Source: Octopus sinensis
Taxonomy: Eukaryota
Reading direction: 5' to 3'
DNA length: 64,000 nucleotides
Assembly (NCBI RefSeq): GCF_006345805.1
Contig: NC_043024.1
Location: 2,914,001-2,978,000 of the forward strand
Shown here: positions 9,276-62,454 of the stretch, piece after piece
Layout of the letters: every line of letters starts with the position of its first letter
Numbering within the stretch: position 1 is the stretch's first letter
Notes under the pieces: generated by a model
The model's database searches: none
What the model saw: only the letters and a program-made list of their open reading frames with translations
Told to the model about the DNA's origin: nothing
Translations under genes and position numbers: made by a program

Positions 9276-10505
<1,230 letters not shown>

Positions 10506-21485: not shown

Positions 21486-22105
21486 TTTCACATCAATGAA
21501 ACTACAATGGAAATTGTAGTTGTGATCCCTGTGCCGGTAGCACATAAAAAGCACCAGCCGAACGTGGCCGATGCCAGCACCGCCTAGACTGGCTTCCGTG
21601 CCAGTGGCACATAAAAAGCACCATCCGAATGTGGCCATTGCCAGTGCCGCCTTGACTGGCTTCCGTGCCTGTGGCACATAAAAAGCACCATCCGAATGTG
21701 GCCATTGCCAGTGCCGCCTTGACTGGCTTCTGTGCCGGTGGCACGTAAAAAGCACCAATCCAATCGTGACCATTGCCAGCCTCGCCTGGCACCTGAGCAG
21801 GTGGCATGTAAAAAGCACCCACTACACTCATGGATTGGTTGGCGTTAGGAAGGGCATCCAGCTGTAGAAACTGCCAGATCAGACTGGAGCCTGGTGCAGC
21901 CTCCTGGCTTCCCAGACCCCAGTCAAACTGTCCAACCCATGCTAGCATGGAAAACGGACGTTAAACAATGATGATGATGATGATGATGATATGATGCCAG
22001 ATCAAGATTGAAGCCCGGTGCAGCCATCTGGTTCGCCAGCCCTCAGTCAAATCGTCCAACCCATGCTAGCATGGAAAACGGACCTTAAACGATGATGATG
22101 ATGAT
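21486..22105 (+). mobile_element. RTE 3' UTR with about 5 minisatellite units and two successive (GAT)n tails, in the 3' UTR of gene D
   Basis: Repeated gtgcc(a/g)gtggcacataaaaagcaccatccgaa units. Tails at about 21965-21995 and 22087-22105. Confidence 0.75.
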
Positions 22106-22116
22106 CAGTGTGACAG

Positions 22117-23367
22117 TTAACTCATTGATAATTCATCATTTTGAAAGAACGATTTAGGAGGGACTTCAGATTTCTCTCTTGCATGAATTCGTTTGTGTTT
22201 AGTTAAGCTACTCCCAACAGAGAATGATTTCCCGCAGACGTCGCAATGATACGGCTTCTCTGCCGAATGAACACGTTTATGAACTGTTAAATGATAGTTT
22301 CTCGAGAATGATTTACCGCAAATATCACAATACGGTTTCTCACCCGTGTGTAAGCGTTTGTGGATAGCAAATTCATTATTCCGAGCAAACGATTTCCCAC
22401 AGGTATCACACAGGTAAGGCTTCTCACCTGTATGGATACGCTTGTGAATAGCCAAGCTATCTCGGTTAGACAATGATTTACTACAAATATCACACTGATA
22501 TGGCTTCTCACCTGTATGAACACGTTTGTGACTAACCAAGCATCGATTTTCGTAGAACGATTTACCACAGATGTCACAGTGATACGGTTTCTCCCCTGTA
22601 TGAAGGCGTTTGTGTCGAGTTAACCTGCTGCCATCAGAGAATGATTTACTACAGATATCACAATAAAACGGTCTCTCACCTGTATGAATACGTTTGTGAG
22701 TAATCAAGCTAGACGCAGCGGAGAATGATTTACCACAGGTGTCACAGTGATAAGGTTTCTCTCCTGAATGAATATGTTTGTGAGTAGTTAAGTTACTTGT
22801 AGCGGAGAATGATTTACCACAGATATCACAGTGGTACGGTTTTTCTCCTGTATGGGTGCGTTTATGTTTCGTGACGGTACTCCCTGTCGAGAATGCCTTA
22901 CCACAGATATCACAATGATATGGTTTCTCCCCGGTATGAATGCGTACGTGAGTAGTTAGATCCCTATTTTGAGTGAATGATTTACCACAAGTGTCACAAT
23001 GATATGGTTTCTCTCCCGTATGAATATATTTGTGTATGTTTAACTTATCTCTTCGAGAGAATGATTGCCCACAGATATCACAGTGATATGGTTTCTCTCC
23101 TGTATGAATTCGTACGTGTTTAATTAAACTACCTCCAAGGGAGAACGATTTTCCACAGATGTCACAATGATATGGTTTCTCCCCTGTATGAATGCGTTTG
23201 TGACTGACTAAATCTGAATTTTGATAGAAAGATTTTCCACAGGTATCGCAGTGATGTTGTTTCTCACCTCTCTGAATGCATTTGTGTTGGTTGAGTTTAC
23301 CTTCATTTGAAAATGATGTTTTGCTGGTGTCACAGTCATGTAACGATTTTCCTAATTCTTCCGACAT
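22117..23367 (-). CDS. C2H2 zinc-finger protein (gene D), 13 intact fingers plus 1 degenerate N-terminal finger, 416 aa
   Basis: Open ORF of diverse fingers. The ATG lies 2 nt after a ttttcctgcAG acceptor at 23371-23370. Confidence 0.9.
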
Positions 23368-23369
23368 CT

Positions 23370-23783
23370 CTGCAGGAAAAATAAAATCAATCCGTCAATA
23401 ACTTTTCAAAAATGTCTCTCCTCTCACCAAAATTTATGGATATTTTTCTTCTTTTTGCTTTAATAGTTAATTCCAAACAAATATCACTTCTCTTATATTT
23501 CTTCTAAATGTGATCAATGCCAATATTTAAAAATGCCGCAAATACTCTTTGTAAATCCATCAAAGTATATTTAAAAGAGAAAATTATCTCTTGCACATTT
23601 CAGACACAGAAGTAAAGAAATGCTTTCTCTCTCAGAGGAAATATTTTACTGTAATTCAGCAATGTTTTCTAGAAGCAGGATTATACGTTTGTAGAATATC
23701 TTTGCAGAGTCTTTCAAACATGATACATATTGATGATTCTTTAAAAGTAAAAAATACTTTTTAGCCAATTTCATGTGATTTTT
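23370..23783 (-). other. Leader exon region of gene D (acceptor ctttcAG at 23785-23784), containing the 87-nt invariant block 23687-23773
   Basis: Near-identical to 32700-33097, 61790-62221 and 55200-55440. Confidence 0.55.
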
Positions 23784-24021
23784 CTGAAAGAATAGAAAAA
23801 ATAATATAAGACATCAAGTATGTTTAAAAGGCAGATATTCAAAAGTGCAAATTTACAACATTTCTGTTTTCATAAATTGCTGAAGTAAACCTTTAACTGA
23901 ACTTTTTAAACTTATCCAATTGGGACAAGTCGATTACGTCAACACCAGTGGTTTTCTGACACATTAATTTATGGACCCATAACAGATAAAAGATAAAATT
24001 AATCTCGGCAAGATTCGACCC

Positions 24022-24345
24022 TGTGCATGAGGAGACCTATCGAGTCAAGTACATCAACATCAAAAATCAATGGAAACTGTAGTTGTGATCCCTGTGCCGG
24101 TGGCACGTAAAAGGCACCATCCGAACGTGGCCGATGCCAGCCTTGCCTGGCACCTATGCTGGTGGCACGTAAAAAGCACCCACTACACTCACGGAGTGGT
24201 TGGCGTTAGGAAGGGCATCCAGCTGTAGAAACACTGCCAGATCAGATTGGAGCCTGGTGCAGTCTCCTGGCTTCCTAGATCCCAGTCAAACCGTCCAACC
24301 CATGCTAGCATGGAAGGCGGACGTTAAACAATGATGATGACGGTG
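24022..24345 (+). mobile_element. RTE 3' UTR fragment nested in an old S2 SINE
   Basis: Minisatellite unit, gttggcgttaggaagggcatccagc block and gttaaacaatgatgatga tail. Confidence 0.7.
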
Positions 24346-24592
24346 ATTTCGACTCAGGATGTAAGAATCAAAAGCAATGCCGACGCTAAGCAATTTTCCA
24401 AACGAGCTGACATTTCTACAAGGTCACTACCTTGAGTGAAGAACTAATATTCATTCTCTGGTGAGGAAAACCAAAATCTTTCGCTGTAAATTACAGATGT
24501 TCCAAACAAAATACACTTCATTATCGACAAGATATTCATCCAAGACTTGGGATAAACACAGTAGCGATCGATAACCAAACCTAGGGGAAGCG

Positions 24593-25199
24593 GGTACTAC
24601 TTGAGAACAATGGTCCCGGTGCGCGCACTCGCGCTAACTAGTAGATCCTACAACGACTACGTAGCAAAGTAAATAAAATACAAAATAAATAATTTGTTAA
24701 ACAAAGGCGCAGGAGTGGCTGTGTGGTAAGTAGCTTGCTTACCAACCACATGGTTCCGGGTTCAGTCCCATTGCGTGGCACCTTAGGCAAGTGTCTTCTA
24801 CTATAGCCTCAGGCCGACCAAAGCCTTGTGAGTGGATTTGGTAGACGGAAACTGAAAGAAGCCCGTCGTATATATGTATATATATATGTGCGTGTTTGTG
24901 TTTGTCCCCCTAGCATTGCTTGACAACCGATGCTGGTGTGTTTACGTCCCCGTGTCACCTAGCGGTTCGGCAAAAGTGACCGATAGAATAAGTACTGGGC
25001 TTACAAAAAAGAATAAGTCCCGGGGTCGAGTTGCTCGATTAAAGGCGGTGCTCCAGCATGGCCGCAGTCAAATGACTGAAACAAGTAAAAGAGTAAAGTA
25101 AATAAAACACAAAGTAAGGATCGACTAGTCATGACTAGCTAGCGCGGATGCACAAGTACGCGAGTGCGCGCACCGGGACCACTTTTCTCAAGTAGTACC
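24593..25199. mobile_element. Merlin-family MITE with a 9-bp TSD, carrying an S1 SINE insertion (24706-25094)
   Basis: TIR ggtactacttgagaa(c/a)a(a/g)tggtcccggtgcgcgcactcgcg at both ends. Exact TSD ggggaagcg at 24584-24592 and 25200-25208. Confidence 0.9.
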
Positions 25200-26080
25200 G
25201 GGGAAGCGTTTGTTAGCTGAAATCACCCGTAGACGGGTTAATTTCTAAGAAATTAAACCCGTCAGAGTTCAACCGGGCAATTTATTATTGCCGACGGGAG
25301 CTGGTCCGCAATCGTCGTAAAGTCGACAACGACCTGCATTGGTTAATGAGGACAATTAAATTAGTGAAGATATTTCTCCAAACGTAATTATTTTACTTAA
25401 ATTTTTTTACCACTTTAATGTTTACCCTTTTAAAATTAGAATATCCGTGTTTTGTCTTTTATTATTTTTAAAAATCATTAAATCTTATGAGTGATATTTT
25501 TCATCGTTATTGTTTCGAAACGAAAACGAAATATTGTCTAATTCCAAGAGTGGAAAATACATTCTTATTAAAAGTAGACGTATTTCGAAGAGAGGAGAGA
25601 GAAAAAGAATAATTAATTTCAAATAACATTAAGGAAAAAGATATTAACTACAAGTTGTAATGATGCAGAGGAACCAACAGCAATAAATATTTCCAAATTT
25701 TCAAATAAATGTTCCATTTCTTCAGCTAGTGCTATTTCCTTTTCGTTTCAGTATTTCAAGTACACGATCGTAGTTTTATACATTACCCATTTCTTTCAAA
25801 TTTCATCGGAATTTTTCAACATTTAATTAAATTATCGAATTTATCAGAGATAAAGAGAAATTTAGTTCGAATATGGTATTGATCTGATGTTAAGAATATA
25901 GGAAATAACCAAAACTGCAATGGAATGTCTAAAAACAAGAACAATACAATGAAAGTATTAAAATAATATAATTTCGTCTTTGTTTAGTGAGATTCTTTTA
26001 ATTTATTGAACACATCGGAAGAAATCGATGCACGTAATATGACACATATACACTAAAAATATTTATATAATAAATACAAT

Positions 26081-26300
26081 ACTTACATGGTAATATATAT
26101 ACATATGTATAGAGTCAACGAGGAAGCTGTGAAGAACTTAAGTCAAGTGGATAATTAATAGCTTCAAGAGAATTCCTAAGTTTTTTTATAACAAACTTTG
26201 ATTCATATTTTCCAGGTCAATATATAAAAAAACGAATGTTGTTTCTATATCTTTACACAGTTAATTGTATATTTAATTGGGTTTCCACTTAATTATCAGT
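26081..26300 (-). other. Predicted non-coding exon 1 and GTAAGT donor (26086) of gene D; upper limit approximate
   Basis: Paralogous to 34791-35000 and to 6600-6808 on the opposite strand. Intron 25480-26080 is paralogous to 33760-34790. Confidence 0.55.
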
Positions 26301-26495
26301 AATAAAGTGGAGGCGATCGAGCAGGACAGACGTGGATGAAGAAACCACAGAATTGGGAGGATTTAGCAATTAAGTGACTACGGGAGCTAACTCTATGAGT
26401 CTCAGGCAGCCTGGCATTACTTAATACGGTTTTATACTAGCGAGCACCTGTCGTCAAAAATAGCCGTCGATCTTTCGATACTAGTAACATAACTG

Positions 26496-27636
26496 GGTTC
26501 CTTTCGGTTTGAACGGTAGTTTTTTAACATAATTTCTAGGTAACTAAAAAATTTTAAACTTCGTATACTGGTAGAATGTGTTTATAAAACATCTTTTTCT
26601 CTTGGCTTTATTGAGAAAATTCTATAGTTTGTAAGATATTTGTTGTTTTTTTTCCTTCAATTTTTGCAATTTCAACCAATCAATGACGTCCATTGAGGTA
26701 AAAAAATTCTGTGTCGTATGAATATGTCCCTCGTTTAAGAAACAGGATCTTTTCGGTTTGAACGACAGTTTTTAAAAATAATTTCCACGTAACTAAACAC
26801 TTTTAAACTTCGTATACTGGTAGAATGTGTTTATAAAACATCTTTTTCTCTTGGCTTTATTGAGAAAATTCTATAGTTTGTAAGATATTTGTTGTTTTCT
26901 TTTTCTTCAATTTCAACCAATCAATGACGTCCATTGAGGTAAAAAAAAATATTCTGTGCCGTATGAATATGTCCCTCATTTAAGAAACAGGATCTTTTCG
27001 GTTTGAACGGCAGTTTTTAAAAATAATTTCCACGTAACTAAACACTTTTAAACTTCGTATACTGGTAGAATGTGTTTATAAAACATCTTTTTCTCTTGGC
27101 TTTATTGAGAAAATTCTATAGTTTGTAAGATATTTGTTGTTTTCTTTTTCTTCAATTTCAACCAATCAATGACGTCCATTGAGGTAAAAAAAAATATTCT
27201 GTGCCGTATGAATATGTCCCTCGTTTAAGAAACAGGATTTTTTCGGTTTGAACGGCAGTTTTTAAAAATAATTTCCACATAACTAAACACTTTTAAACTT
27301 CGTATACTGGTAGAATGTGTTTATAAAACATCTTTTTCTCTTGGCTTTATTGAGAAAATTCTATAGTTTGTAAGACATTTGTTGTTTTTTTTCCTTCAAT
27401 TTCAACCAATCAATGACGTCTATTGAGGTGAAAACATTCTGTACCGTATGAATATGTCCCTCGTTTAAGAAACAGATTGGGTTTATTTACATTTGTGAAG
27501 AAAAAAGATACCCTTTCCCCTAACCCCAACCCTAAAACACATTGAAATGCAATAGATCGATACTAGGGTCATAATTATGGGTGACAATTTCATATGACAC
27601 CGCTAGAAAAAACTGCTGTTCAAACCGATAAGATCC
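26496..27636. repeat. DNA-transposon derivative whose left arm is amplified into 4 tandem units of about 245 bp
   Basis: Units start at 26496, 26745, 26990 and 27235 with gg(a/t)tc(t/c)tttcggtttgaacg. A single right TIR ctgctgttcaaaccgataagatcc ends at 27636. The arm is related to the MITE at 5607-6021. Confidence 0.85.
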
Positions 27637-30600
27637 AAAAGTTGTTTTTAAGTTACAATGGCTTAAAGTTCGATTATGTTTACTCATTCACAAAACAGGG
27701 TTTGGAAGCTATCATTTTGAGCATGGCAACACATGTTGTCAGATATTTGTGAATCTGTATTCTTCACACGGTACTTTTACTTTTGTTTCAGTCATTCGAC
27801 TGCGGCCATGCTGGAGCACCGCTTGTAGTCGAACAAATCTACAACTCTCTCTCTTCTCTTTCCCCTCCTTAATTCTTTTGTTCCTCTTTTTCTCTCCCCA
27901 CGTGACCAATAGGCCAGACTGCTAGCCCTCTTTTTGCGTCTGACCACGGTCAGTGCAACATCGATATTCTTCCGTGTGTTTGTGAAAGCTCTGTATCTCT
28001 GCCGTAAGGCTTCATTTCCGCACACACCAGCTGAATTCAATTCGTCCCCAGTCGAAAGACACCTGTTGTTATGTCCTGCTATTATTATTAATATTTTTAT
28101 TGTATTTATATTTGTGTAACATCGTCTGTTTTTCCGTATACATTCCATGCTTTCTTCCAAGGAATCTGATGCTCTTAGCTTACTTTTTCCTTGGGGCTGG
28201 CCAGATTGGAGCAATCTCAAGATTAATCAGCCGAAATTGCGAGGATGATCTGGTTCTTTACAGGGGACAGAAAGCTTCGAATGACCCGTCCTTTCTTTTT
28301 CATAAAGGACCCGTTTGTACTTTGGTGTGAAATAATTTTTTCCACACGTTTTTTTGAGTGCATTCAACGATGCTCAGTCCGAACCCACCACCCGCCAGAT
28401 TCTTCCGGAAAAGAAAGGGGGAGGGGTGGTGGGGGACCTTGGAGTTTCCCCACCAACAGAGTTTTTTTTTTTTTTTTCTGGGTTACTTTACATGCTTTCA
28501 ATGTATGTGACATTGAAATTATACGTAAACGGCTCCTTTCCTTAGAAAAGGAAAGATTCAGCCACTATTTCTTGCATGCCCTGCTACCAGGTAACAGCTA
28601 TTTTGAGTCCTGTATCGTAAATAGCTGTTGTATGGTAACAGGGCATGCTAGAAATAGCAACCAAATCTTTGGAGATGAGATATATTGAATGCACTTGAAT
28701 AAAACCTATGGAAACAATTTATTTCACAGTGAGGTTATGAACAGGTCTTTTACGAAATATTTACGGTATTTCTAAAGCCATCTTCACTTTAAAATATTTT
28801 TTAAATATGCCAAAACAATTTTCGTAATGGTATTCAATTGAAAATAATAAAAAAATAAATAAAATTGTCTGTTTAAAGAAAGCTAAAATATAAATACAAA
28901 AAAGCAAAAATAGAAACATTTCCTGTAAAAACAACTTTTTTTGTTGGCAAGTTAGTCATAATGTGTCTAACCGAAAGGCTAGAAATTCTTCCTTTTCAAC
29001 GTTAAGTTATTTTTGGTGTATTTTCCCAATATGCACTGTTCTGGGTATTTATACCCACCAAAACTCCTAATATCTCAAGAACCAGTTGTCCAATTCATGC
29101 GAAACTTGTTTTATTCCGTTTGTATTCACATTTCAAGAAAGTCTTAATTCTTAGTATTTTCCCCATTATGTGCCATTTTGGCTATGTAACATTGGAAGCA
29201 AGATTGAAGTTCATTTTTAATGTAATATATGTGTGTGTGTGTGTGTATAGGTCTGCCTACTTACAACTGCAATACAAGTATTTAGTTGTGAATAAACCAT
29301 TATACTTGGCACTTGTTGGCCTGGAGAAAGTCTTTGAGAGAATTCCTCAGTTGGCCACACACCAAGGTTCAACAGAACCTACTGAAGTAAGCCAACGTGC
29401 TTCTGGCATTATCACAGGCAAGAGCAAGATGTCGACATTAAAGTTCGTACTGTTTTCAAATTTTGGCACAAGGCCAGCAATACCACGGGTGTGTGTGTGT
29501 GTTAAGTTGAATATGTCGATTCCAGTGCTCAACCGTTGCTTATTTCCACCAACCCCCAAAAGGACGAAAGACAAAGTCCACCTTGGCAGAATTTAAATGC
29601 AAATGTCATGTCAGAAGAACCACAGCTAAGCATTTTCCCCAATGTGCTAACGACCCTGCCAGTTCGCCACTTTAGTTTATTATTAATTACTAGTGGGACC
29701 CATGTAAATTCTACAGAATGAAAAAAATTAAGAGGACCTATTTAAGAAAGAGAGGATGATTTGCATTTTTATAGCATTCATAGTTTTAGCTTTCTTTGAA
29801 TATACTTGGCATCTGTCTACATCCAATTCCTCACAACACCATCGGTGCCATCTTTTTCCTCTCTTTTATTATATCTTCTTAGTGTTCCATGCTCTAGATC
29901 TGTGCATCTTTTCTCAGGCAGCTTGCAACCGTGTCTCTAGTGAATCCATAGTTTAGGCTAAATTAATCCTTAGAAACAAATATCAATCTCTTAAGTGAGA
30001 AGGCGATAAATTGCACAGAAGTGCAAGTGTTGAGTGATGGTCTCTATAAAAAAAAAAATTCCTTTACCCTATCAACACACCACCACCACCATCATCTCTC
30101 TCTCTCTGCCTTTCTTTAATATCAACATCAGAACATCACCCCTCTGCTAAGATTATATTTCTAACTCTTCCCTATATCACGACCTTCAGCTAGCTTTTTT
30201 AACCATAAAATAACTATTACACTCCCCCCATCACGTCATGCTTGCTTCTTTCTTAGTCTTTTTGTTTCTCCTTTTTTTTTCTTTCTCTATTTGTCTCACT
30301 CTTTGTCTTATCATCTTTTCTCTCTGTACCCCCTTTTCTCTAATAACATGAAAGTGTTACTGACGAGCTAAGTAACAGAATGAGAAGCAGAATTATTATA
30401 AGATCACCTTACTCTATTTCTCCCTCCCTTTTCTCCACTTCTGTCCCCACCCCTCATTTATTCCACTAATCTAATGAAAGCATAACAGCTGTACAAACAA
30501 GCTGGTTATTATATATGTACATAAATATCATTTTTGTCTGAGGTTTGGATAATATTTTTTGCAGAGTAATTACATATCACATAAGAAGACTGGAAAACAG

Positions 30601-30751
30601 TTTGATAGTATTTATTCAGCATTACATGTGTTTCATTACCTAATAGGAATTACAAACTTTTAGACAAAGAGAAAACATGTAAAATATCTCCTATAAGAAA
30701 TTCTTCATACATACATATATACACGTGTGTGAGTGTGTGTGTGTATGCGCA

Positions 30752-31003
30752 AGTGAGTGTATCCTTGTCCAGACATTATGTGATGTCCGTAAATGGCCAT
30801 CATGACCGTCATACTTGTGCAGTTGTTCATTTCCAGTCCTCTGCGTAAATTATGTCTCACCAGGGAAAATATTTCCTTGCTTGGAAACAGGTGAGGATTG
30901 GTGACAAGAAAGGGTACCCAGCTCAGGAAAATCTCCATCAATGAATTCCATCTGATCCATTGAAGCATGGAAAAGCGAATTTTAAATGATGAGGATTATC
31001 ATC
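30752..31003 (+). mobile_element. RTE-tail-type SINE/3' UTR repeat (family S4); paralogous copies at about 58990-59180 and 59768-60020
   Basis: cttgcttggaaacaggtgaggattggtgac...gatccattgaagcatggaaaa...ttttaaatgatga. Lies in the shared 3' region of genes E and F. Confidence 0.6.
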
Positions 31004-31333
31004 TTTGTAGTGATATGGTTCCTCTTCTGTATGAATGCAGTTATGTTTTAATAATTGATCATTTTCATAGATTGACTTAGCACAAATGTCTTAGGGTATG
31101 GTTTTATCTTTCATATTAATAGGACTGTGTATAATTCTCCATTTTCATAGAATGATTAAGCACTGCTATCACAGTGATATGTTCTCCTTCCTCTGTCAAT
31201 GCTCTTTTGATTCGTTAATGGATCATTTCAAATGAAAGGCTTACCATTGATATAGTTTCTTTCTTGTGTAGAGGGTTTTATGAGATACAAACTTGTCCTT
31301 CTGAAGTAATGTTATACAACCAATGTCACTGTG

Positions 31334-32698
31334 TTATGGATCAACTTCATAGTGAATACTCTTGTGTTTAATTGAGTGATGTTTTTGTGAGAATGATTTA
31401 CCACAGATGTCACAGCGATATGGTTCCTCACCTGTGTGAATACGTTTATGTGCAGTCAAGGTACTGCTAACAGAGAATGATTTACCACAGATATCACAGG
31501 AATATGGTTTGTCTCCTGTATGAATACGCTTGTGTTTAGTTAAGCTGCTGCTTTCAGAGAAAGATTTGCCACAGATATCACAGTGGTATGGTTTCTCCCC
31601 TGTATGAATACGCTTGTGTTTGGTTAAGCCACCGCTTTCAGAGAATGATTTACCACAGATATCACAGGGATATGGTTTGTTTCCTGTATGAATACGTTTG
31701 TGTTTAATTAAGGTACTGCCACCAGAGAATGATTTACCACAAATATCACAGTGATATGGCTTGTCTCCTGTATGAATACGTTTGTGTGCAGTTAAGTTAC
31801 AGCGAACAGAGAATGATTTACCACAGATATCACAGGGATATGGTTTCTCTCCTGTATGAATGTATTTGTGAGCAGTTAAGTGGTGATTTTGAGAGAATGA
31901 TTTACCACAGATATCACAGGGATATGGTTTCTCTCCTGTATGAATGTATTTGTGAGCAGTTAAGTGGTGATTCTGAGAGAATGATTTACCACAGATATCA
32001 CAGGGATATGGTTTCTCTCCTGTATGAATGTATTTGTGAGCAGTTAAGTGGTGATTCTGAGAGAATGATTTATCACAGATATCACAATGATATGGTTTCT
32101 CTGCTGTATGAATAAGTTTATGAGTGGTTAGGTTGCTATTTCCAGAGAATGATTTACCACAGATATCACAGGGATATGGCTTGTCTCCTGTATGAATACG
32201 TTTGTGTTTAATTAAGGTACTGCCACCAGAGAATGATTTACCACAGATATCACAGTGATATGGTTTGCCCCCTATATGAATATGCTTGTGATTATCTAAG
32301 CTATGAGCATGAGAGAATGATTTACCACAGGAATATGGTTTCTCACCTGTATGAATACGTTTGTGTTTAGTTAAGCTACTACTTTCAGAGAATGATTTAC
32401 CACAGATATCACAGGGATATGGTTTCTCACCTGTATGAATACGCTTGTGTTTGGTTAAGCTACTGCGAACAGAGAATGATTTACCACAGATATCACAGGG
32501 ATATGGTTTCTCCCCTGTATGAATACGCTTGTGTTTGGTTAAGCTACTGCGAACAGAGAATGATTTACCACAGATATCACAGTGATATGGTGCTTCCCCT
32601 TTATGAATTTGTTTGTGTTGATTGAATTTACTTTCTTCTAAGAATGACTCTTTGCAGATGTCACAGTCATATGATGATTTTCCTAATTCTTCAGACAT
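31334..32698 (-). CDS. C2H2 zinc-finger protein (gene E), 16 finger units (15 intact, one lacking a Cys), 454 aa
   Basis: Open ORF with three identical QNHHLTAH fingers. The ATG lies 2 nt after a ttgaAG acceptor. Leader acceptor at 33099-33098, exon 1 donor at 34796. Confidence 0.9.
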
Positions 32699-33844
32699 CT
32701 CTTCAAGAAAAATAAAATCGATCCTTCAAGTTCTACAGATCAACAACTTTTCAAAAATTTATGGATATTTTGCTTTTATAGTTTATTCCAAACAAATATC
32801 ACTTCTCTTATATTTCTTCTAAATGTGATCAATGCCAATATTTAAAAATGTTGCAAATACTCTTTGGAAATCCATCAAAGTATATTTAAAAGAGAAAATT
32901 ATCTCTTGCACATTTCAGACACAGAAGTAAAGAAATGTTTTCTCTCTCAGAGGAAATATTTTACTGTAATTCAGCAATGTTTTATAGAAGCAGGATTATA
33001 TGTTTGTAGAATATCTTTGCAGAGTCTTTCAAACATGATACATATTGATGATTCTTTAAAAGTAAAAAATACTTTTTAGCCAATTTCATGTGATTTTCTG
33101 AAAGAATAGAAAAAATAATATAAGACATCAAGTATGTTTAAAAGGCAGCTATTCAAAAGTGCAAATTTACGACATTTCTGTTTTCATAAATTGTAGAAGT
33201 AATTCTTTATCTGAACTATTAAATTTATCCCATCTCTCTATTTTCAAGAGGTTTATATCACAGACACATCCATCGTAATAACACCTCCTGGACATTGCGT
33301 CTGTCCTAGACACACACACTCACACCAATATACATGTCAATGACAGTAGATATCTGATGTTTTCCCCTCAGTGTTCTATTGTATCAACACAGGTTTGTTT
33401 TATAAAATAGACATCACTCCTCCTCTGCCTCTTTCTGTATGTGCATAAATATACAAATATATATATGTGGTTAGCTTAATGTTAACCTTTTGTTGAGCAT
33501 AAAAGATGCATAAAAGTCAGTAAATAATATTGATGTCTGACTTGCAGCATCAAAATCTTTTGTGGGGAATTTTTGATGTTAAGAAAAATTGTTGGTTGAT
33601 GAAATTGGTGACAATCCTTCTCCATGGGGCAAATGGAAGAGGCTTCAATGAAGTCTATCCTTATTTTACGGAAAAACTATAATTTCTTTTCATTGTTATG
33701 CACAGAGTTTTAAAACTTAGCCATTCTTGTTTCTTTCTTTTAATTATAAATTCTTACACATTATAATTAATGTTTCTCTTCCTTGTTGCTTCAAAACGAA
33801 ATATTGTTTATCTGGATGAGTGAAAAATACATTCATATTAAATA

Positions 33845-51743: not shown

Positions 51744-51961
51744 TGTTACTGCAGTTTAGTGAGATTTGGCTTTATTTCTAGCATGAAAATAGCCGGCTTG
51801 AGGGGGATACATCTCTATATTTAAAAAAAAAAAAAATTTTACAAAAAAGTGAAAACTGAATTAATGGGGAGGGAGGGGGGGATTTGAATTTTTGAAGTTG
51901 CGATTTATAATTATTCTGTGACAATATAATCTGTACTTACCACATGTGTGGTAGATTTGTT

Positions 51962-52189
51962 AAAAGCTCTACCTGCGACGATTTCATCTCAATCGAAGGA
52001 GAGGTGCTTTCTCCGTCCGGGTTGCGGATCCGTGGAACAAGCTGCCAGACGAGATGGTGAAGATGCCGACGACCGCTTTGTTCAAAGCCTCCCTGGACCT
52101 CAAGTGGCCTGAACTCTTTACATGAACACCACCCTGTACTTAACTCCATGTCCTTGCTATTTGCTTTTGAGCCTAACTAACTAACTAAC
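51962..52189 (+). mobile_element. CR1/L2-like 3' end, third copy
   Basis: Same catttcatctcaatcgaaggagag...gtggaacaagctgcc 3' region as 38700-38940, with a ctaactaactaac tail. Confidence 0.8.
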
Positions 52190-52268
52190 AAATCTACCAC
52201 GCTTCTATTTCAAATTTTTTAACGTTGTCAGTTGTTACAGCAGCCACGTGGAAATTGGTCGAACATCT

Positions 52269-53066
52269 TTATTGCCCAGGATACAAATTCGCAGCTTGCA
52301 ATAAAAATTCATGAATCCTTTTGGGGGCAGGGCGGAAAGCTTGCATGAATTGGTACCTAGCAACATATTGTTTTAAGAAACACGGTTTAATTCCAGGCCT
52401 TATCACGTTCCTCTTTAAGCTCCCCCAAAATCTTTCTATTGTCTGTGTATGAATAGATGGGTTTGCTGGATCGACAAAGTTCTGGCTGTGATTTATTTGG
52501 AAATGCTTGTAACCCAAACTATCTAGCCTATTATATATGGGCCAACAATCGCTATATACAGTTGAACCAGGATGAATGTGGCGTCTGATTAATGGAATCA
52601 GTGTGGAAGAATCTCGCCTTTGAATTTCACAACATTCCGATGTCAGAGGTATCAAAAAATTTTTCTTGGAATCCCTTTCCATTCTGCCAAAAAGCCAAAT
52701 AGTTTTCACAAGTCTCCCCCTGTTATATTTCCTCCTAACCAAGACTGTCTCATCTATTTCAACTGCGATCCCTGGCCCTCCAATTGGTGCTTGGGAATTT
52801 TCGACCCAATGAAGGCAGACTTCAGAGCAGAAAGACCTCCAATCAACAGACGTGGCAAGCGATATATCTAAATTGTCCATAACAGCTTGATGCGACCAAC
52901 CTTCTGTTAAATGATTTATATACAAAAGAATTTTCCATGGGGGTAACCGATTCCACTCCAAAAAGGTGTTCTTAAATATCGAAACCGAAAAACCACATTC
53001 TGTTGCCTTTTGTCTTCCACGACGATCCATCTTCCTGCAACGAAATACATGTCCCATTTCGTAGAA
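52269..53066 (-). mobile_element. Merlin/IS1595 (ISXO2-like) DDE transposase B, N-terminally truncated by a fold-back junction
   Basis: IGGPGIAVEIDET, VYSDCW, INHSQNFVDP...HTQTIERFW: all three catalytic acidic residues are present. The first 35 aa or so of ORF 52269..53171 come from unrelated sequence. Confidence 0.85.
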
Positions 53067-53120
53067 ATGTGAATTGCCCAACATGCAATTCACTGTGTGT
53101 TCTACGAAATGGAACAGATA

Positions 53121-53569
53121 TATTACTGGAAGAATGCGAAAAGACGATTTAAGATCATGATGGGGGTACACTCCAACATGGTGGAATCGTATCTAGACGA
53201 ATTTCTGTGGAAGGAGCAATAAGGGAAGTGTGGAAAGGAATGTCTTGAAAACATTCTTAAGCACCTTTCCGAACGTTTCACATTCAAGTGAATCAAATGA
53301 ACTGCAAGAACTGAGATATTCAATTTTCTACTTGCTGTTTGCTTTTTATTTACTTCAATTAATTTGTGTAAAAAAATGATATACATAAAAATTTTTTTAA
53401 AAATCTTTGTTTATAAAAAAAAATTTTATTTACTTCGTTTCCAAATATGTATCGCGCATGCACCAATCTATTCATTAGCATATGCGCAAGTTGTAGGATC
53501 GATTACTTATGACCAGCTAGCGAGGATGCAGGACTGAGCGTACCGGGACCACTGTTCGCTAGTAGTACC
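53121..53569 (+). mobile_element. Merlin element A: transposase C-terminus, 3' subterminal region and right TIR
   Basis: + frame reads YYWKNAKRRFKIMMGVHSNMVESYLDEFLWKEQ*...LENILKHLSERF. TIR gtaccgggaccactgttcgctagtagtacc ends at 53569. Confidence 0.75.
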
Positions 53570-53580
53570 GAAATACTTTG

Positions 53581-53643
<63 letters not shown>

Positions 53644-53692
53644 TGGGGAAAAAAAGAAAAATCGCCCCCCACGAATATATACAATCAAGATT

Positions 53693-54550
53693 TTAAAATC
53701 TTGCAATCCCCGCTAACAGTTTTTCAAAAAGATCGCAACCTTCGTACCTTTTGCGCCACATAATTTCACAGAGACCGGAGTCAATCATAGAACTCTGCTT
53801 AACACAGGCCCAAGGGCCTTCCATCCGTGGCGACTTTGACTTTGACTTAGACCGAGCACCGTGCTTCTCTGCTTTATGGCGAAATTGATAACCCTCGATC
53901 TCCGGAATATGAGAGTAAGATCTCCACAGATCACTAATGACCGTGGTTCCGGGGAGAACCGATTGGCGGATGCATTCTTCGAGTGTGTCGCGATCCCGAC
54001 ATGTTATTGTATAGAGAAAAACCTGCTTGGCCTTGCGACACACTCCTTTATAGACCCACTGGTGGGGCGGCCGACCTCCAAGTCTACATTTCCTCCTCGA
54101 GAAGACTGTCTCGTCTATCTCGACAACCTTCCCAGGACCACCTATCTGAACTGGGTTGAAGAGTAAGTCCTCTGCACAGACTTCTCTTAAACAGCTGGTG
54201 TAGTCAACAGCTGCAGTGTGACTCACACCCAGCTCTTCATAACAATAACGTATCGTGGTCAGCTTCTTCACCCAAGAATACAAGAAAAGGAGGATAGTTC
54301 GCAGAGGAAGCGAGGTGCCTTCCAGCCATGTACCTTTCCTAACAGATAGAGACTGGTCACAGCCTTTCCGTGTGCAGCGCCAGCGAACGCTCCGATCTTT
54401 CACTTTGCGTTTCATGAAATGTCTCTTTTTACATCTTTTCTTTGGAGGTATTATACCCTTCTCTGCAAAGAAAGCTACCGCATCCGCTTCGGTCCTAATC
54501 GTGTTGAACAAATCCATGAGGCCATGCGGTTTAGTTGCAGCCACAGCCAT
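53693..54550 (-). CDS. Intact 285-aa Merlin/ISXO2-like transposase-derived ORF (C)
   Basis: N-terminal C-x3-H...WRC-x4-C zinc-binding motif, SVRKGTWLE, IGGPGKVVEIDET, VISDLWRSY, a diverged RH...RMEG third motif and a DSGLCEIMWR C-terminus. No stops, and no TIR pair seen. Confidence 0.75.
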   Translation of the reverse strand: MAVAATKPHGLMDLFNTIRTEADAVAFFAEKGIIPPKKRCKKRHFMKRKVKDRSVRWRCTRKGCDQSLSVRKGTWLEGTSLPLRTILLFLYSWVKKLTTIRYCYEELGVSHTAAVDYTSCLREVCAEDLLFNPVQIGGPGKVVEIDETVFSRRKCRLGGRPPHQWVYKGVCRKAKQVFLYTITCRDRDTLEECIRQSVLPGTTVISDLWRSYSHIPEIEGYQFRHKAEKHGARSKSKSKSPRMEGPWACVKQSSMIDSGLCEIMWRKRYEGCDLFEKLLAGIARF

Positions 54551-55199
54551 ACTTCCTCAATACAACAGTAGGGGGGAAATGCAAAAGTGCAAAGAGACGA
54601 TCGAAAAGCAAAAAAAAAAAAAAAAAAAAACCCTACTATGCAACAGACAGCAAACAGAAATAAAATATTAACAGATTGGGGGGAAAATAATCACAAAATT
54701 AACATGGGGAAATGTACAAAAGGGGGCGTTCAAAAAACAAGAAAAAATACAAAAAAAAAACGTGTAATATGAAACAGGTAGGAAACAAAAAAGTTAAATA
54801 GAACAGTGTTGGAAATAATTACAGGTAGTGAGTAAAAATATCCACATATAAGTTAAAAAAAATATACAGTCAAATTAAAGAACACACCAGAATAATTAAT
54901 GTGCACGTGGTCGTGTTGCTCTCAGATTACTATCGCAAACAGTAGGATTCTTCATGCGACAACATGGAATAAATTCTAAAGTACACGTGGTTCTGTTGCT
55001 CTTTGGTTACTTTCACAAACAGTAGAAGGTATCTTCAGGTATTTGTCGATTTGGTTAGAATAATCCAAATGCGACAACATGAAATAAATTCTAAAATACG
55101 AAAGCTTGTGAAAAATGTTGACAGTGTTCAGCGTGAGAAATTACACCAGTATATGAAGTTTCAAACAGTTCAGTTTAAAATATATAATCAAAAATATCT

Positions 55200-55445
55200 G
55201 TGAACCAAATTGAAGAGATTTAAATTACCTCTTGCGCATTTCATTCAGCGAAATAAAGCAATGTTTTTTTCTTTCTCTCTGAGGAAATATATTACTGTAA
55301 CTCAGCAATGTTGTATAGAAGCAGGATTATACGTTTGTAGAATATCTTTGCAGAGTCTTTCAAACATGATACATATTGATGATTCTTTAAAAGTAAAAAA
55401 TACTTTTTAGCCAATTTCAGGCGATTTTCTGAAAGAATAGGAAAA
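55200..55445 (-). other. Orphan copy of the zinc-finger leader exon (no finger ORF downstream)
   Basis: Contains the 87-nt invariant block at 55333-55419 and the ctttcAG acceptor context. Confidence 0.75.
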
Positions 55446-55486
55446 TAATATAAGACATAGAATATGTTTAAAAGGTACAAATTTAC

Positions 55487-55715
55487 GGTACCAATTAATA
55501 GTAGTCACGGTGCGCGCACTCGCGATAGTTAGTCGTGACTAGTCGATCTTTACTTTGTGTTTCTGTTCTACTTTGTTTAAAAAGAATTATTTAGTTTGTG
55601 TTTTATTTGTTTCAAATAAAATTATTTACTTTGCTAGATAGTCGTTGTAGGATCGAGTAGTCACGACTAGCAAGCGCAGATGCGCGTACCGGGACCACGC
55701 TTCTTAAATAGTACC
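55487..55715. mobile_element. Merlin-family MITE, 229 bp, 9-bp TSD
   Basis: Exact TSD caaatttac at 55478-55486 and 55716-55724. Same family as 24593-25199 in the opposite orientation, without the SINE. Confidence 0.85.
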
Positions 55716-56843
55716 CAAATTTACAATTGTTTTGATAAATTGTAGACGTAAACCTTAAATTATAAATGAATGAGATACAGTAATTATAATAGCGACCCCT
55801 GGATATTAAATCCTTAACAAAACTCTATCACCCTCTCTCAAACATATATATATATATATATATATTTTATCTAGTTTCAGCTCACGAGCTGTGGCCATGC
55901 TGGGGCACCGCCATTAATGTGAAGTTTTCACGGCGAAGGTAAAGAATACGCACACCTGGTGTTTAGGAACACGACGAAAACGGGTTGTGCGTTTTCTTTA
56001 CCCCTGCAAATTGAAACACGATGGGGAGGGGTCAACGGAATCCAGAGATTTATTTAAGGAATGGATAACAGCTCTCATACGAAAGAAAGAAAGATAATAA
56101 CTAGGCCTAACTTCGGTATAAGTACCGGATATATTTCAAGAACGTGTTTTTTTTTTATATGGAGGGTTTAGGGTTTAGGAGGAAAGGGTTTGTGTTATCT
56201 TCAGAAATGTACACAAAGTCACGTGTGTACCTATACCGAAGGTTCGCCAATAATTACATTATTGTGTACCAAAATGCATGCAAATAAAGATAATTATGTG
56301 TTGGAGTGATGCAACAAAAAAAAAAAAAAAGGGTTAATACTCACTAATAATCAGACGCCCTTACTCGCCAAAAAGGGTTACGGGTGCGTTTTCTTTACCC
56401 CTGCAAACTGTAACACGATGGGGAATTAACACGTTGTGCAAATGGTGATTTGTCACGGTTAATTTTAAGTGATATGTGTGTCTAGAAGGAAAAATATCAG
56501 CCTCTCGCTACATGTGGTTAACGAACACTGGGACGGAGTAAAAATGACGGATTAACTCGTCAACGTCAAAACAGCAACTAAAGTTGACCTCTCCGGTTTT
56601 GGCGCTAGTTGCTATGTGTATCCTTCCGCCGCAAGCTACAAGTGAGCGGAGTAACGTACCCTTGTACGAAATAGTTCGATGCCAGTGTACATAAGTATAA
56701 CCAAAACTGCAATGGAATATCTAAAAGAAAGAAGGCTGTGACCATGTATTTTTGTCTTTGTTTAGTGAGATAATTTCTCTTGCACATTTCATTCAGTAAA
56801 ATAAAAGTTTTTTTTTCCTTCCAGAGGAAATATTTTACTGGGC

Positions 56844-56923
56844 CAAAATAATTCTATAATTTTATACACACGCTTTCCGTACGTATACGGAAAGCGTGTG
56901 TATAAAATAATAGAATTATTTTG
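56844..56923. repeat. 80-nt hairpin, 38-bp arms with one mismatch and a 4-nt loop
   Basis: caaaataattctataattttatacacacgctttccgta-cgta-tacggaaagcgtgtgtataaaataatagaattattttg. Confidence 0.9.
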
Positions 56924-60394: not shown

Positions 60395-60415
60395 TTAAGC
60401 TCTGATATCAGACCG

Positions 60416-61789
60416 TTATGGTTTCTCCTCTGTATGAATATGTTTGTATTCAGTCAAGATGCTCTGAAGAGAGAATGATTTACCACAGATATCACAAAGA
60501 AATGGTCTCTCCTCTGTATGAACATGGTTGTGTACAGTTAATTGTTGGTTTGTAGAGAATGCCTTGCCACAGATATCACTCTGGTATGGTTTCTCACCTA
60601 CATGAACATACCTGTGCATAACTAATTGTTTGTTTTGAGAGAATGATTTACCACAGATATCACAATGATATGGTGTTTCTCTTGTGTGTATAAGTTTGTG
60701 TGCAGTTAAATGGTATTTTCGACAGAATGATTTACTGCAGATATCACACTGATATGGTTTCTCACCTGTATGAATCCGTTTGTGTGTAGTTAAGGTACTG
60801 CCAGCAGAGAATGATTTACCACAGATATCACAGTGATAAGGTTTTTCCCCTGTATGAACCCTTTTGTGCGTAGTTAAGCTACTGTCAACAGAGAATGATT
60901 TACCACAGATATCACAGTGATAAGGTTTTTCCCCTGTATGAACCCTTTTGTGCGCAGTTAAGCTACTGCTAACAGAGAATGATTTACCACAGATATCACA
61001 GTGATAAGGTTTCTCTCCTGTATGAACCCTTTTGTGTATAGTTAAGCTGTTGCTTTTAGAGAAAGATTTACCACAGATATCACAGTGATAAGGTTTCTCT
61101 CCTGTATGAATACGCTTGTGTTTAGTTAAGCTGTTGCTTTTAGAGAAAGATTTACCACAGATATCACAGTGATAAGGTTTCTCTCCTGTATGAATACGCT
61201 TGTGTTTAGTTAAGCTTTTGCTTTTAGAGAAAGATTTACCACAGATATCACAGTGATATGGTTTTTTTCCTGTATGAATACGTTTGTGTCGAGTGAAGCT
61301 ACTGTCAACAGAAAATGATTTTCCACAGATATCACAGTGATAAGGTTTTTCCCCTGTATGAATACGTTTATGTACAGTTAAATAGATATTTCGAGAGAAT
61401 GATTTACCACAGATATCACAGTGATATGGTTTCTCTCCTGTGTGAATGTATTTGTGAGTAGTTACCTCACTTCTTTCATAGAATGATTTATCACAAATGT
61501 CACACTGATATGGTTTGTCTCCTGTATGACTACGTTTATGTACTGTTAAATAGATATTTTGAGAGAATGATTTATTGCAGATATCACAGTGATATATTTT
61601 CTCTCTCGTATCAATTTGTTTATGACTGAATAATTCTGAATCTTGACAGACTGATTTATCACAGGTATCATGGTGATTTTGTTTCTCATCTGTATGAATG
61701 CATTTGTGTCTAGTGAGTTCACCTTTTTCTGAAAATGACTCTTCGCAGATGTCACAGTCATATGATGATTTTTCCAATTCTTCCGACAT
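60416..61789 (-). CDS. C2H2 zinc-finger protein (gene F), 16 finger units (13 intact, 3 degenerate), 457 aa
   Basis: Open ORF with the same MSEEL(G/E)KS N-terminus and leader as genes D and E. Leader acceptor at 62223-62222. Exon 1 not found in the window. Confidence 0.9.
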   Translation of the reverse strand: MSEELEKSSYDCDICEESFSEKGELTRHKCIHTDEKQNHHDTCDKSVCQDSELFSHKQIDTREKIYHCDICNKSFSQNIYLTVHKRSHTGDKPYQCDICDKSFYERSEVTTHKYIHTGEKPYHCDICGKSFSRNIYLTVHKRIHTGEKPYHCDICGKSFSVDSSFTRHKRIHTGKKPYHCDICGKSFSKSKSLTKHKRIHTGEKPYHCDICGKSFSKSNSLTKHKRIHTGEKPYHCDICGKSFSKSNSLTIHKRVHTGEKPYHCDICGKSFSVSSSLTAHKRVHTGEKPYHCDICGKSFSVDSSLTTHKRVHTGEKPYHCDICGKSFSAGSTLTTHKRIHTGEKPYQCDICSKSFCRKYHLTAHKLIHTRETPYHCDICGKSFSQNKQLVMHRYVHVGEKPYQSDICGKAFSTNQQLTVHNHVHTEERPFLCDICGKSFSLQSILTEYKHIHTEEKP

Positions 61790-62454
61790 CTCTTCAAGAA
61801 AAATTTAATGAATCCTTCAAGTTTACGCGTCAATAACTTTTCAAAAATATTTCTCCTCTCACCAAAATTTATGGATATTTTGCTTCTTTTTGCTTTAATA
61901 GTTAATTCCAAACAAATATCACTTCTCTTATATTTCTTCTAAATGTGATCAATGCCAATATTTAAAAATGTTGCAAATACTCTTTGGAAATCTATCAAAG
62001 AATATTTAAAAGAGAAAATTATCTCTTGCACATTTCAGACACGGAAGTAAAGAAATGCTTTCTCTCTCTCTCAGAGGAAATATTTTACTGTAATTCAGCA
62101 ATGTTTTATAGAAACAGGATTATACGTTTGTAGAATATCTTTGCAGAGTCTTTCAAACATGATACATATTGATGATTCTTTAAAAGTAAAAAATACTTTT
62201 TAGCCAATTTCATGTGATTTTCTGAAAGAATAGAAAAAAAATATAAGACACAGAATATATTTTAAATAATCTGAATATTGTTTCTGAAAATTATCTCCAT
62301 TCACTTTGTGCATAGAAAAGATAAATTTGCTGCTTCAATTCTCCAGAATAACATTTGTTAAAGGACTTATACACATAAACATCAATCCTTAACCATCAGA
62401 AAGATTAGAAATACAGCCAAAATTTAAAATATCTAGGTGAAATGAAATAGGATC

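Follow-up and report, generated by a model that had tools for sequence, protein, structure and literature searches.

A Merlin-derived reading frame without transposon ends in an Octopus sinensis zinc-finger gene cluster: a candidate host gene with octopus paralogs

Introduction

The Merlin superfamily comprises the eukaryotic relatives of the bacterial IS1595/IS1016 elements (Pfam DDE_Tnp_IS1595, "ISXO2-like"). New DNA-binding proteins are known to arise when hosts co-opt transposases; to our knowledge, Merlin is almost absent among the known donors. Here, we analyzed a 64,000-nucleotide (nt) stretch of the Octopus sinensis genome (contig NC_043024.1, positions 2,914,001 to 2,978,000, forward strand; "the window" below), which contains an uninterrupted Merlin/ISXO2-derived open reading frame (ORF) of 285 codons at window positions 53693..54550 on the minus strand ("the target" in the following). 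Its surroundings are a cluster of C2H2 zinc-finger (ZNF) genes, with copies of long and short interspersed nuclear elements (LINE, SINE) and of miniature inverted-repeat transposable elements (MITEs) scattered through the window. Our literature searches turned up no work on cephalopod genes derived from Merlin or ISXO2. If the target and its octopus relatives are indeed host genes, they would, as far as these searches show, be the first Merlin-derived ones described in a mollusc.

Merlin transposons are recognized by terminal inverted repeats (TIRs) of 24–462 bp starting with 5'-GG and by target site duplications (TSDs) of 8–9 bp (PMC8101967). Like them, the target encodes ~290 amino acids (aa) with an N-terminal Cys/His motif and an RNase-H-fold core carrying D, D, E, and K; unlike them, it lacks GG-initial TIRs, an 8–9-bp TSD, and the motifs HT(Q/N)xIE and NFVDP, and its locus is fixed and has splice-site-like surroundings. 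Conserved Merlin ORFs without TIRs were proposed to be domesticated in ciliates, dinoflagellates, and kinetoplastids (PMC8101967). The argument made for those protist genes is the same as ours, namely a kept ORF, absent TIRs and TSDs, segmental duplication, and synteny between species. In contrast to them, the octopus genes reside in an animal host, in C2H2-ZNF clusters, and have a ZNF-type leader in common, and for one octopus lineage the ratio of non-synonymous to synonymous substitution rates (dN/dS) and a deficit of insertions and deletions (indels) were measured.

Capture of a transposase gives rise to host-transposase fusion genes, such as KRABINER, a mariner inserted in ZNF112, and a splice acceptor directly upstream of the transposase ORF was found in 8/9 cases examined (Cosby et al., bioRxiv 10.1101/2020.05.07.082677). 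The target resembles these genes in that a transposase ORF lies in a zinc-finger gene setting with an acceptor immediately upstream, and a paralog resembles them in that the O. vulgaris model P0035 joins transposase codons to a C2H2 remnant. However, the exon upstream of the target is non-coding, so that no fusion protein is expected, and its splice is putative; moreover, the target belongs to Merlin, a word absent from that paper, and its host is a mollusc. A further lead is MAB-31, a nuclear factor of the Sma/Mab pathway with a developmental role in C. elegans, which in 2010 was said to resemble nothing outside nematodes (PMC2921377). NCBI names an ISXO2-domain protein of shrimp "mab-31-like"; this shrimp match belongs to the lineage of another ORF neighboring the target, not to the clade of the target itself. 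Should MAB-31 carry an ISXO2 domain, animals would already offer one example of a host gene descended from Merlin.

Results and Discussion

The Target Reading Frame

An initial annotation of the window had described the target as an uninterrupted 285-codon ORF of the ISXO2/Merlin type, and both the ORF list and the Pfam search bore this out. The target scored just above the cut-off of the Pfam model DDE_Tnp_IS1595 (27.9 bits, cut-off 27) and under that of the NCBIfam model IS1595 (46.2 bits, cut-off 75), and it was 37–48% identical to many proteins of the Merlin/ISXO2 family. Its translation exactly matches the NCBI protein P0033 of O. sinensis LOC115225578, which RefSeq names only "uncharacterized protein" and for which NCBI lists the isoforms X1 (285 aa) and X2 (P0001, 275 aa); the chromosome record carrying the protein is CM016886.1 (2,957,693–2,978,550). 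Exact look-ups of the protein in public assemblies, a collection that does not seem to include octopus read sets, yielded genome records only, and isoform X2 was not among the entries. The GC content of the ORF is 0.47–0.51, compared to 0.30–0.35 in its flanks.

The N-terminal part (54158..54439, minus strand; residues ~38–131) contains a C-H-C-C zinc-ribbon-like motif (C40, H44, C59, C64), of which C59 and C64 are nearly invariant in our alignment A4, and a helical region of the DNA-binding type. In a structure model obtained with AlphaFold2 (AF2), this part consists of three short strands and then helices, with a predicted local distance difference test (pLDDT) score of 90–96. Confidence exceeded 90 over residues 11–150 and fell below 50 over residues 229–256. 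A fold search with the model returned DDE integrases and transposases only, as generic matches to the RNase-H fold.

The residues D146, D207, E244, and K251 align to invariant or nearly invariant columns (alignments A1 and A4), and with seven residues from E244 (codon 53819–53821) to K251 (codon 53798–53800) the E...K(7) signature is kept. What has changed is their context. In a segment remodeled in frame (53783..53875, minus strand; residues 226–256), the block VNHS..NFVDP..HT(Q/N) is replaced by KAEKHGARSKSKSKSPRM, and nine residues after K251 are lost. The initial annotation was right in noting the lost context and the shortened segment before the C-terminal helix; its listing of only the first two catalytic residues as kept fell short, as E244 and K251 are both present. 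Catalytic death of the target is accordingly not established, since D, D, E, and K are all kept. A hidden frameshift in the remodeled segment was considered and rejected, as the other two frames of 53800–53880, inspected by eye, do not contain the lost motif. Beyond the segment, the C-terminal helix is still 61–68% identical to that of the paralogs described below, and the frame has therefore been read for most of the history of the lineage.

Loss of the Transposon Ends

No element ends could be defined around the target. A generic repeat search returned only (TA)n pairs and no inverted repeat flanking the ORF, and a permissive scan for inverted repeats (14/18 matches; 930 nt upstream against 790 nt downstream) gave six hits compared to ~7.6 in shuffled sequence, none of them beginning with GG. 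GG-initial TIRs of 24–462 bp were not found above chance within ~900 nt on either side of the ORF, nor was an 8–9-bp TSD found around it. The core of the local MITE TIR, GTGGTCCCGGTACGC, occurs seven times in the window. Downstream of the target there is only a solo copy (53538–53552, minus strand), which faces away and has no partner. It lies in a solo 5' half of the local MITE/TIR family (53407..53578, minus strand), located 115 nt past the target stop codon behind a (TA)n tract (53583–53644), and the GG-initial TIR of this half at 53574 is likewise oriented away from the ORF.

Upstream of the target, a Merlin-type MITE (55487..55715, minus strand) with GG...CC ends (GGTAC...GTACC) is flanked by a 9-bp TSD, GTAAATTTG, at 55716–55724 and 55478–55486, and fits the Merlin criteria of GG-starting TIRs and an 8–9-bp TSD (PMC8101967). 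It is inserted ~57 nt upstream of the acceptor of the leader exon discussed below. The earlier statements that no inverted-repeat pair surrounds the target, with the solo TIR facing away, and that this MITE is self-contained with its own TSD both held. The MITE copies at 55715 and 53574 were considered as a TIR pair of the target and rejected, as their orientation is direct rather than inverted.

A second record with the target protein, an unplaced 43.6-kb scaffold (L002), was rejected as an independent second insertion that could define the ends, because at 99.56% identity to the window over 18.7 kb it is a haplotig. Haplotig and window are separated by 25 substitutions and by 32 short indels, of which 24 are deletions in the scaffold, most of them in homopolymers, and 8 are insertions. 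Between the two haplotype assemblies the target ORF has no substitution, which carries little weight as only about one was expected. Further copies of the target were not found in the ~0.15 Mb of sequence examined. In the sequence examined, the target is immobile, as its ends are lost and it occupies a fixed single locus.

A Family of Octopus Paralogs

Three annotated octopus proteins, at 52–56% identity, are closest to the target, and the next relatives reach at most 48%. The three are LOC115225419 (P0002, locus L005) and LOC115222964 (P0003, locus L003) of O. sinensis and LOC106884119 (P0004, locus L004) of O. bimaculoides; the O. vulgaris protein P0036 belongs to the cluster of P0003, and the orthologous O. 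vulgaris locus (L006) is on OX597834.1. By sequence comparison, the target is one of at least three old octopus paralogous lineages. DNA homology between the target and the paralogous loci is restricted to coding sequence (54493–53695), and flanking TIRs were found at none of the three lineages. A 56-nt inverted pair around P0002 was rejected as TIRs holding the ORF; it consists of two outward-facing MITEs of the TTAA/CCC type.

The three lineages share the loss of motifs that other Merlin proteins keep. HT(Q/N)xIE is lost in all three octopus lineages and kept by the 27 other homologs. Within the VNHS-NFVDP-HT(Q/N)xIE block, the alignment A4 columns N384, D387, P388, and T395 are altered in all three lineages, and the loss is therefore probably older than their separation. 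N229 and the phenylalanine of NFVDP are lost in the target alone and kept by both paralogs. Profile scores behave alike, with 25.7–37.4 bits for the octopus clade against 55–65 bits for outgroups and the neighboring Merlin frame of the window with the Pfam model, and 46–50 against 82–91 bits with NCBIfam IS1595, a difference of two- to three-fold. At the 50 columns that are ≥85% conserved among the 27 non-octopus homologs, the target deviates 11 times, P0002 and P0003 12 times each, and P0004 14 times, compared to a median of ~2 in other homologs. Identity to outgroups is 0.40–0.43 for the target and 0.42–0.48 for the paralogs. On this alignment the target is overall no more degenerate than a paralog kept by selection, and the damage peculiar to it is localized.

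P0003, P0036, and P0004 occupy syntenic loci, with flanks 91–93% identical and, in O. sinensis and O. bimaculoides, the same HTH_48 gene downstream. All three species (O. sinensis, O. vulgaris, and O. bimaculoides) retain an intact ORF of 296 codons. Between O. sinensis and O. bimaculoides, dN/dS of this lineage was 0.48 (NG86) and up to 0.66 (maximum likelihood), with 22 synonymous and 41 non-synonymous changes (synonymous excess, binomial p = 0.009). No indel was found in 891 bp of coding sequence, compared to 16 in 2686 bp of flank (6 per kb). The simulated chance of escaping stop codons was 0.096, and the joint chance of an open frame under neutrality was ~0.0025. The P0003 lineage is under real but weak purifying selection at a fixed locus. 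Pairwise dN/dS between the target and the paralogs was 0.22–0.29 in comparisons that are saturated (dS > 1.2).

In O. vulgaris, the 183-aa protein P0035 (CAI9738361) joins paralog codons 1–149 to a degenerate C2H2 remnant 2.3 kb downstream. The junction sites are canonical GT-AG (L006 positions 10448 and 12731), which makes it a predicted transposase-ZNF fusion isoform. The same remnant is present in O. sinensis (L003 12602–13160) and was not found in the O. bimaculoides locus.

A ZNF-Type Leader Exon Upstream of the Target and Its Paralogs

Upstream of the target, on the same strand, lies a copy of the 133-nt internal leader exon of the ZNF genes (55296..55428, minus strand; nhmmer E = 1.4e-66). 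Both splice sites of this orphan leader are intact, with a TTTCAG acceptor (AG 55429–55430) and a GTAATA donor (GT 55294–55295), and its homology to the ZNF units extends into the intron to ~55213. The sequence of the leader exon hardly varies among its four copies in the window, three of which lie 190–220 nt ahead of the ATG of a ZNF ORF. Behind the orphan copy no C2H2 finger array follows for 21 kb, as TBLASTN with a finger array as query found no finger-coding sequence on the minus strand from 32722 to 60404. The intact copy without fingers behind it is as described in the initial annotation, whereas the distance from the end of the leader exon to the target acceptor is 740 nt and not ~650 bp.

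The polypyrimidine tract and AG that had been noted ahead of the target ATG are present as well. This predicted 3' splice site (54556..54630, minus strand) consists of a T21 tract (54610–54630), a pyrimidine-rich stretch, and an AG (54556–54557), followed by GAAGT and the ATG; a TGA in the same frame precedes the ATG by 9 nt. A low-copy repeat containing internal duplications (54740..55219, minus strand) takes up most of the putative intron, and copies of it also occur in the O. bimaculoides locus L004. The orphan leader carries upstream ORFs. Its only open frame is out of phase with the target ATG, and a fusion protein is therefore not expected; no in-frame splice of the target to host coding exons was found at this copy, and the O. 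vulgaris paralog is the only one with a predicted fusion. In the haplotig, a 233-aa gene model runs from the ATG of the upstream ZNF gene across the target region to about 49.3 kb of the window, and its exon structure is underdetermined, with 2 two-exon and 2220 three-exon solutions.

No obvious exon 1 or promoter accompanies any of the ZNF units in the window, and homology among the units (22000–33200, 60400–62300) begins only ~90 nt upstream of the leader acceptor. The missing exon 1, given as a caveat in the initial annotation, is therefore not special to the orphan leader. A fragment of a ZNF unit, comprising the 3' end of the leader and the first ~75 nt of its intron, was observed at 56767–56858 (minus strand), 1.3 kb upstream of the orphan leader. 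The region thus holds several 5' stumps of ZNF units.

In all three paralogous lineages, a leader-like acceptor is located 150–900 nt upstream on the same strand. When the examined octopus DNA was searched with a profile of the four ZNF leader copies in the window, matches were obtained at L005 9757–9849 (E = 1.2e-5) and at the orthologous loci L004 9676–9738 (0.006), L003 9683–9742 (0.04), and L006 9670–9725 (0.043); these paralog matches lie 150–320 nt upstream of the ATG on the same strand and span the polypyrimidine tract, the TTTCAG acceptor, and the first ~40 nt of the exon. All other matches with E < 0.01 were leaders of ZNF genes. For the ZNF gene upstream of P0003, NCBI models a 475-aa product whose coding sequence (CDS) terminates at L003 9733 (9711–9733), inside the leader-like exon and 270 nt ahead of the ATG of the transposase. 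Splicing of ZNF transcripts into this exon therefore seems to occur, and the acceptor is used in at least one gene model. In the P0003 lineage, AAATAG followed by AAGTATGGCC stands in three species at the place of the target acceptor, and target and P0003 have a start-codon context in common, AG followed by (G)AAGTATGGC. Assuming a background of two leaders per 21 kb on each strand, we roughly estimated the probability that all three placements arose by chance at ~1e-4. The simplest reading of these sequences would be that a ZNF-type leader already preceded the ORF in the ancestor of the family and that segmental duplication then multiplied the unit.

Host Gene, Relic, or Transposon

The open frame, the absent ends, the leader and acceptor sequences, the paralog family with its shared features, and the constraint on one paralog are seen directly. 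We infer expression, splicing to the leader, DNA binding, and loss of activity, and give about an even chance to the target being a co-opted Merlin-derived host gene that is run from the ZNF-type 5' cassette and acts via its N-terminal zinc-ribbon and helical DNA-binding part. Transcription would enter via the cassette, and the 133-nt non-coding leader (55428–55296) would be spliced to the acceptor at 54556/54555, five nt ahead of the ATG. The product would be a nuclear protein of ~33 kDa in which the N-terminal zinc-ribbon and helical region binds DNA, while the RNase-H-like core would serve as a scaffold or dimerization module instead of a working cut-and-paste enzyme.

Taken as a whole, the octopus paralog family looks like one that the host has co-opted. 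More tentatively, octopuses might possess a lineage-specific domesticated Merlin family that was captured once behind a C2H2-ZNF leader, long before the split of O. bimaculoides and O. sinensis, duplicated within ZNF clusters, co-expressed with ZNF genes, and occasionally fused to them (P0035). The initial annotation had proposed a transposase captured into the expression cassette of the cluster. The leader-like exons at two other lineages, the syntenic constrained paralog, and the clade-wide motif loss bear this proposal out in part and indirectly; the leader of the target itself is a recent local copy. A family in use by the host would link the large C2H2-ZNF clusters with the heavy transposon activity of octopus genomes, and would provide a concrete case in which a transposase acquired a non-coding leader exon and not a protein domain. 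A silent relic, on the other hand, would be an ordinary finding.

A number of observations speak against co-option of the target. Its ortholog is not annotated in O. vulgaris or O. bimaculoides, where only the P0003 lineage is annotated; since O. bimaculoides went through the same NCBI annotation pipeline, its absence is a hint that the gene was lost or has decayed there. In the haplotig, a 2-nt deletion (L002 position 7930, window 54435–54436; AAAAGATG to AAAATG) shifts the frame at codon 38, so that the NCBI model of the scaffold starts at Met46. The remodeled segment shows a net loss of 12 codons and a low-complexity KS repeat encoded by (AAGTCA)n, and confidence of the structure model around E244 is low (pLDDT < 50). 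Both isoform X2 (P0001) and the haplotig model P0034 omit 30 nt of it (53824..53853, minus strand), which turns RSKSKSKSPRM into L. The boundaries, GG..GA, are not those of a canonical intron, and the skip may reflect either an artifact of modeling or an allele with a deletion that appeared in transcripts. In addition, the constraint on the P0003 lineage is weak, with dN/dS reaching 0.66. A control search of the protein database with the neighboring Merlin frame returned no octopus match above 44% identity, nor was the frame itself in the database, which means that unannotated octopus transposon copies are not sampled by this database. Finally, the orphan leader is 89.7% identical to the copy at 62010–62266, the leader of the ZNF gene 6.8 kb upstream. 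This marks it as a product of recent local copying or conversion and no heirloom of an old capture, and its position upstream of the target ORF could be accidental.

The missing ortholog, the haplotig deletion, the 30-nt omission in both NCBI models, the KS microsatellite with its lost codons and poorly modeled fold, and the loss of N229 and the NFVDP phenylalanine in the target alone would suit a relic without present function, be it a Merlin copy long immobile or a duplicate, now decaying, from a co-opted family. Its frame would still be open because constraint ceased only recently, and NCBI would have modeled the gene solely from the length of the ORF and its similarity to proteins. An open frame is estimated, roughly from indel and stop-gain rates, to survive ~2% neutral divergence with a chance of ~0.2. 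However, all remodeling is in frame and followed by a C-terminal helix that still resembles those of the paralogs, and deviations at conserved columns are no more frequent than in a paralog kept in three species. The haplotig indels resemble assembly errors, and given the deletion bias typical of an unpolished long-read contig the 2-nt deletion is plausibly one of them; the lack of ORF substitutions between the haplotype assemblies adds a little on the same side. We regard a relic as a possible, though not the probable, state of the target. The gene could also be real and its adjacency to the leader accidental, with 55213–55478 being the stump of a truncated duplicate of a ZNF unit and the target depending on its own promoter or on read-through of the upstream ZNF gene. 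The ~90% identity of the orphan leader to the copy at 62010–62266, compared to ~65% similarity over ~50 nt to the leader-like exons of the paralogs, points in this direction, as do the fragment at 56767–56858 with the local scatter of ZNF 5' stumps, the repeat-filled putative intron, and the haplotig model running from the upstream ZNF gene past the target. Yet the same arrangement is found in all three lineages, at the low chance given above, and the orphan exon retains both splice sites, so that we consider an accident rather unlikely. Least of all do we expect a still-autonomous Merlin transposon with unrecognized ends. The four catalytic residues are kept, Merlin-type MITEs are nearby, and families with very imperfect TIRs exist (PMC8101967), but no inverted repeat around the target exceeds chance or begins with GG, the HT(Q/N)xIE and VNHS/NFVDP motifs are lost, the score stays under the NCBIfam cut-off, and paralog homology ends at the edges of the CDS. 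Moreover, the nearby MITE TIR faces away from the target and more plausibly belongs to the neighboring frame. We consider such a transposon very improbable.

Neighboring Elements

This neighboring Merlin transposase frame (52269..53171, minus strand) follows the target on the same strand at a distance of 520 nt and belongs to a different lineage, as it is only 27–30% identical to the target. It is one open frame of 300 codons, contrary to the initial annotation, according to which the other transposase coding sequences in the window were broken or truncated. It aligns to residues 15–313 of a 314-aa homolog, includes the full DDE domain with HTQTIE, passes the NCBIfam cut-off, and is 60–64% identical to contigs in Logan assemblies; only a proper start codon and the N-terminal cysteines are missing. 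The solo GG-initial TIR at 53574 may be the 5' end of its element, which would in that case be the autonomous partner of the Merlin-type MITEs in the window. A 3' end of this element was not found.

Just past the stop codon of the neighboring frame, a 255-bp segment (51945–52200, minus strand) lies between perfect 15-nt inverted repeats, GTGGTAGATTTGTTA and TAACAAATCTACCAC, and looks like a small MITE-like insertion. Among the database proteins, P0277 (1611 aa) and P0278 (1750 aa) contained 14 and 11 separate stretches, respectively, that match the target transposase; each is probably a series of tandem Merlin copies merged into one gene model.

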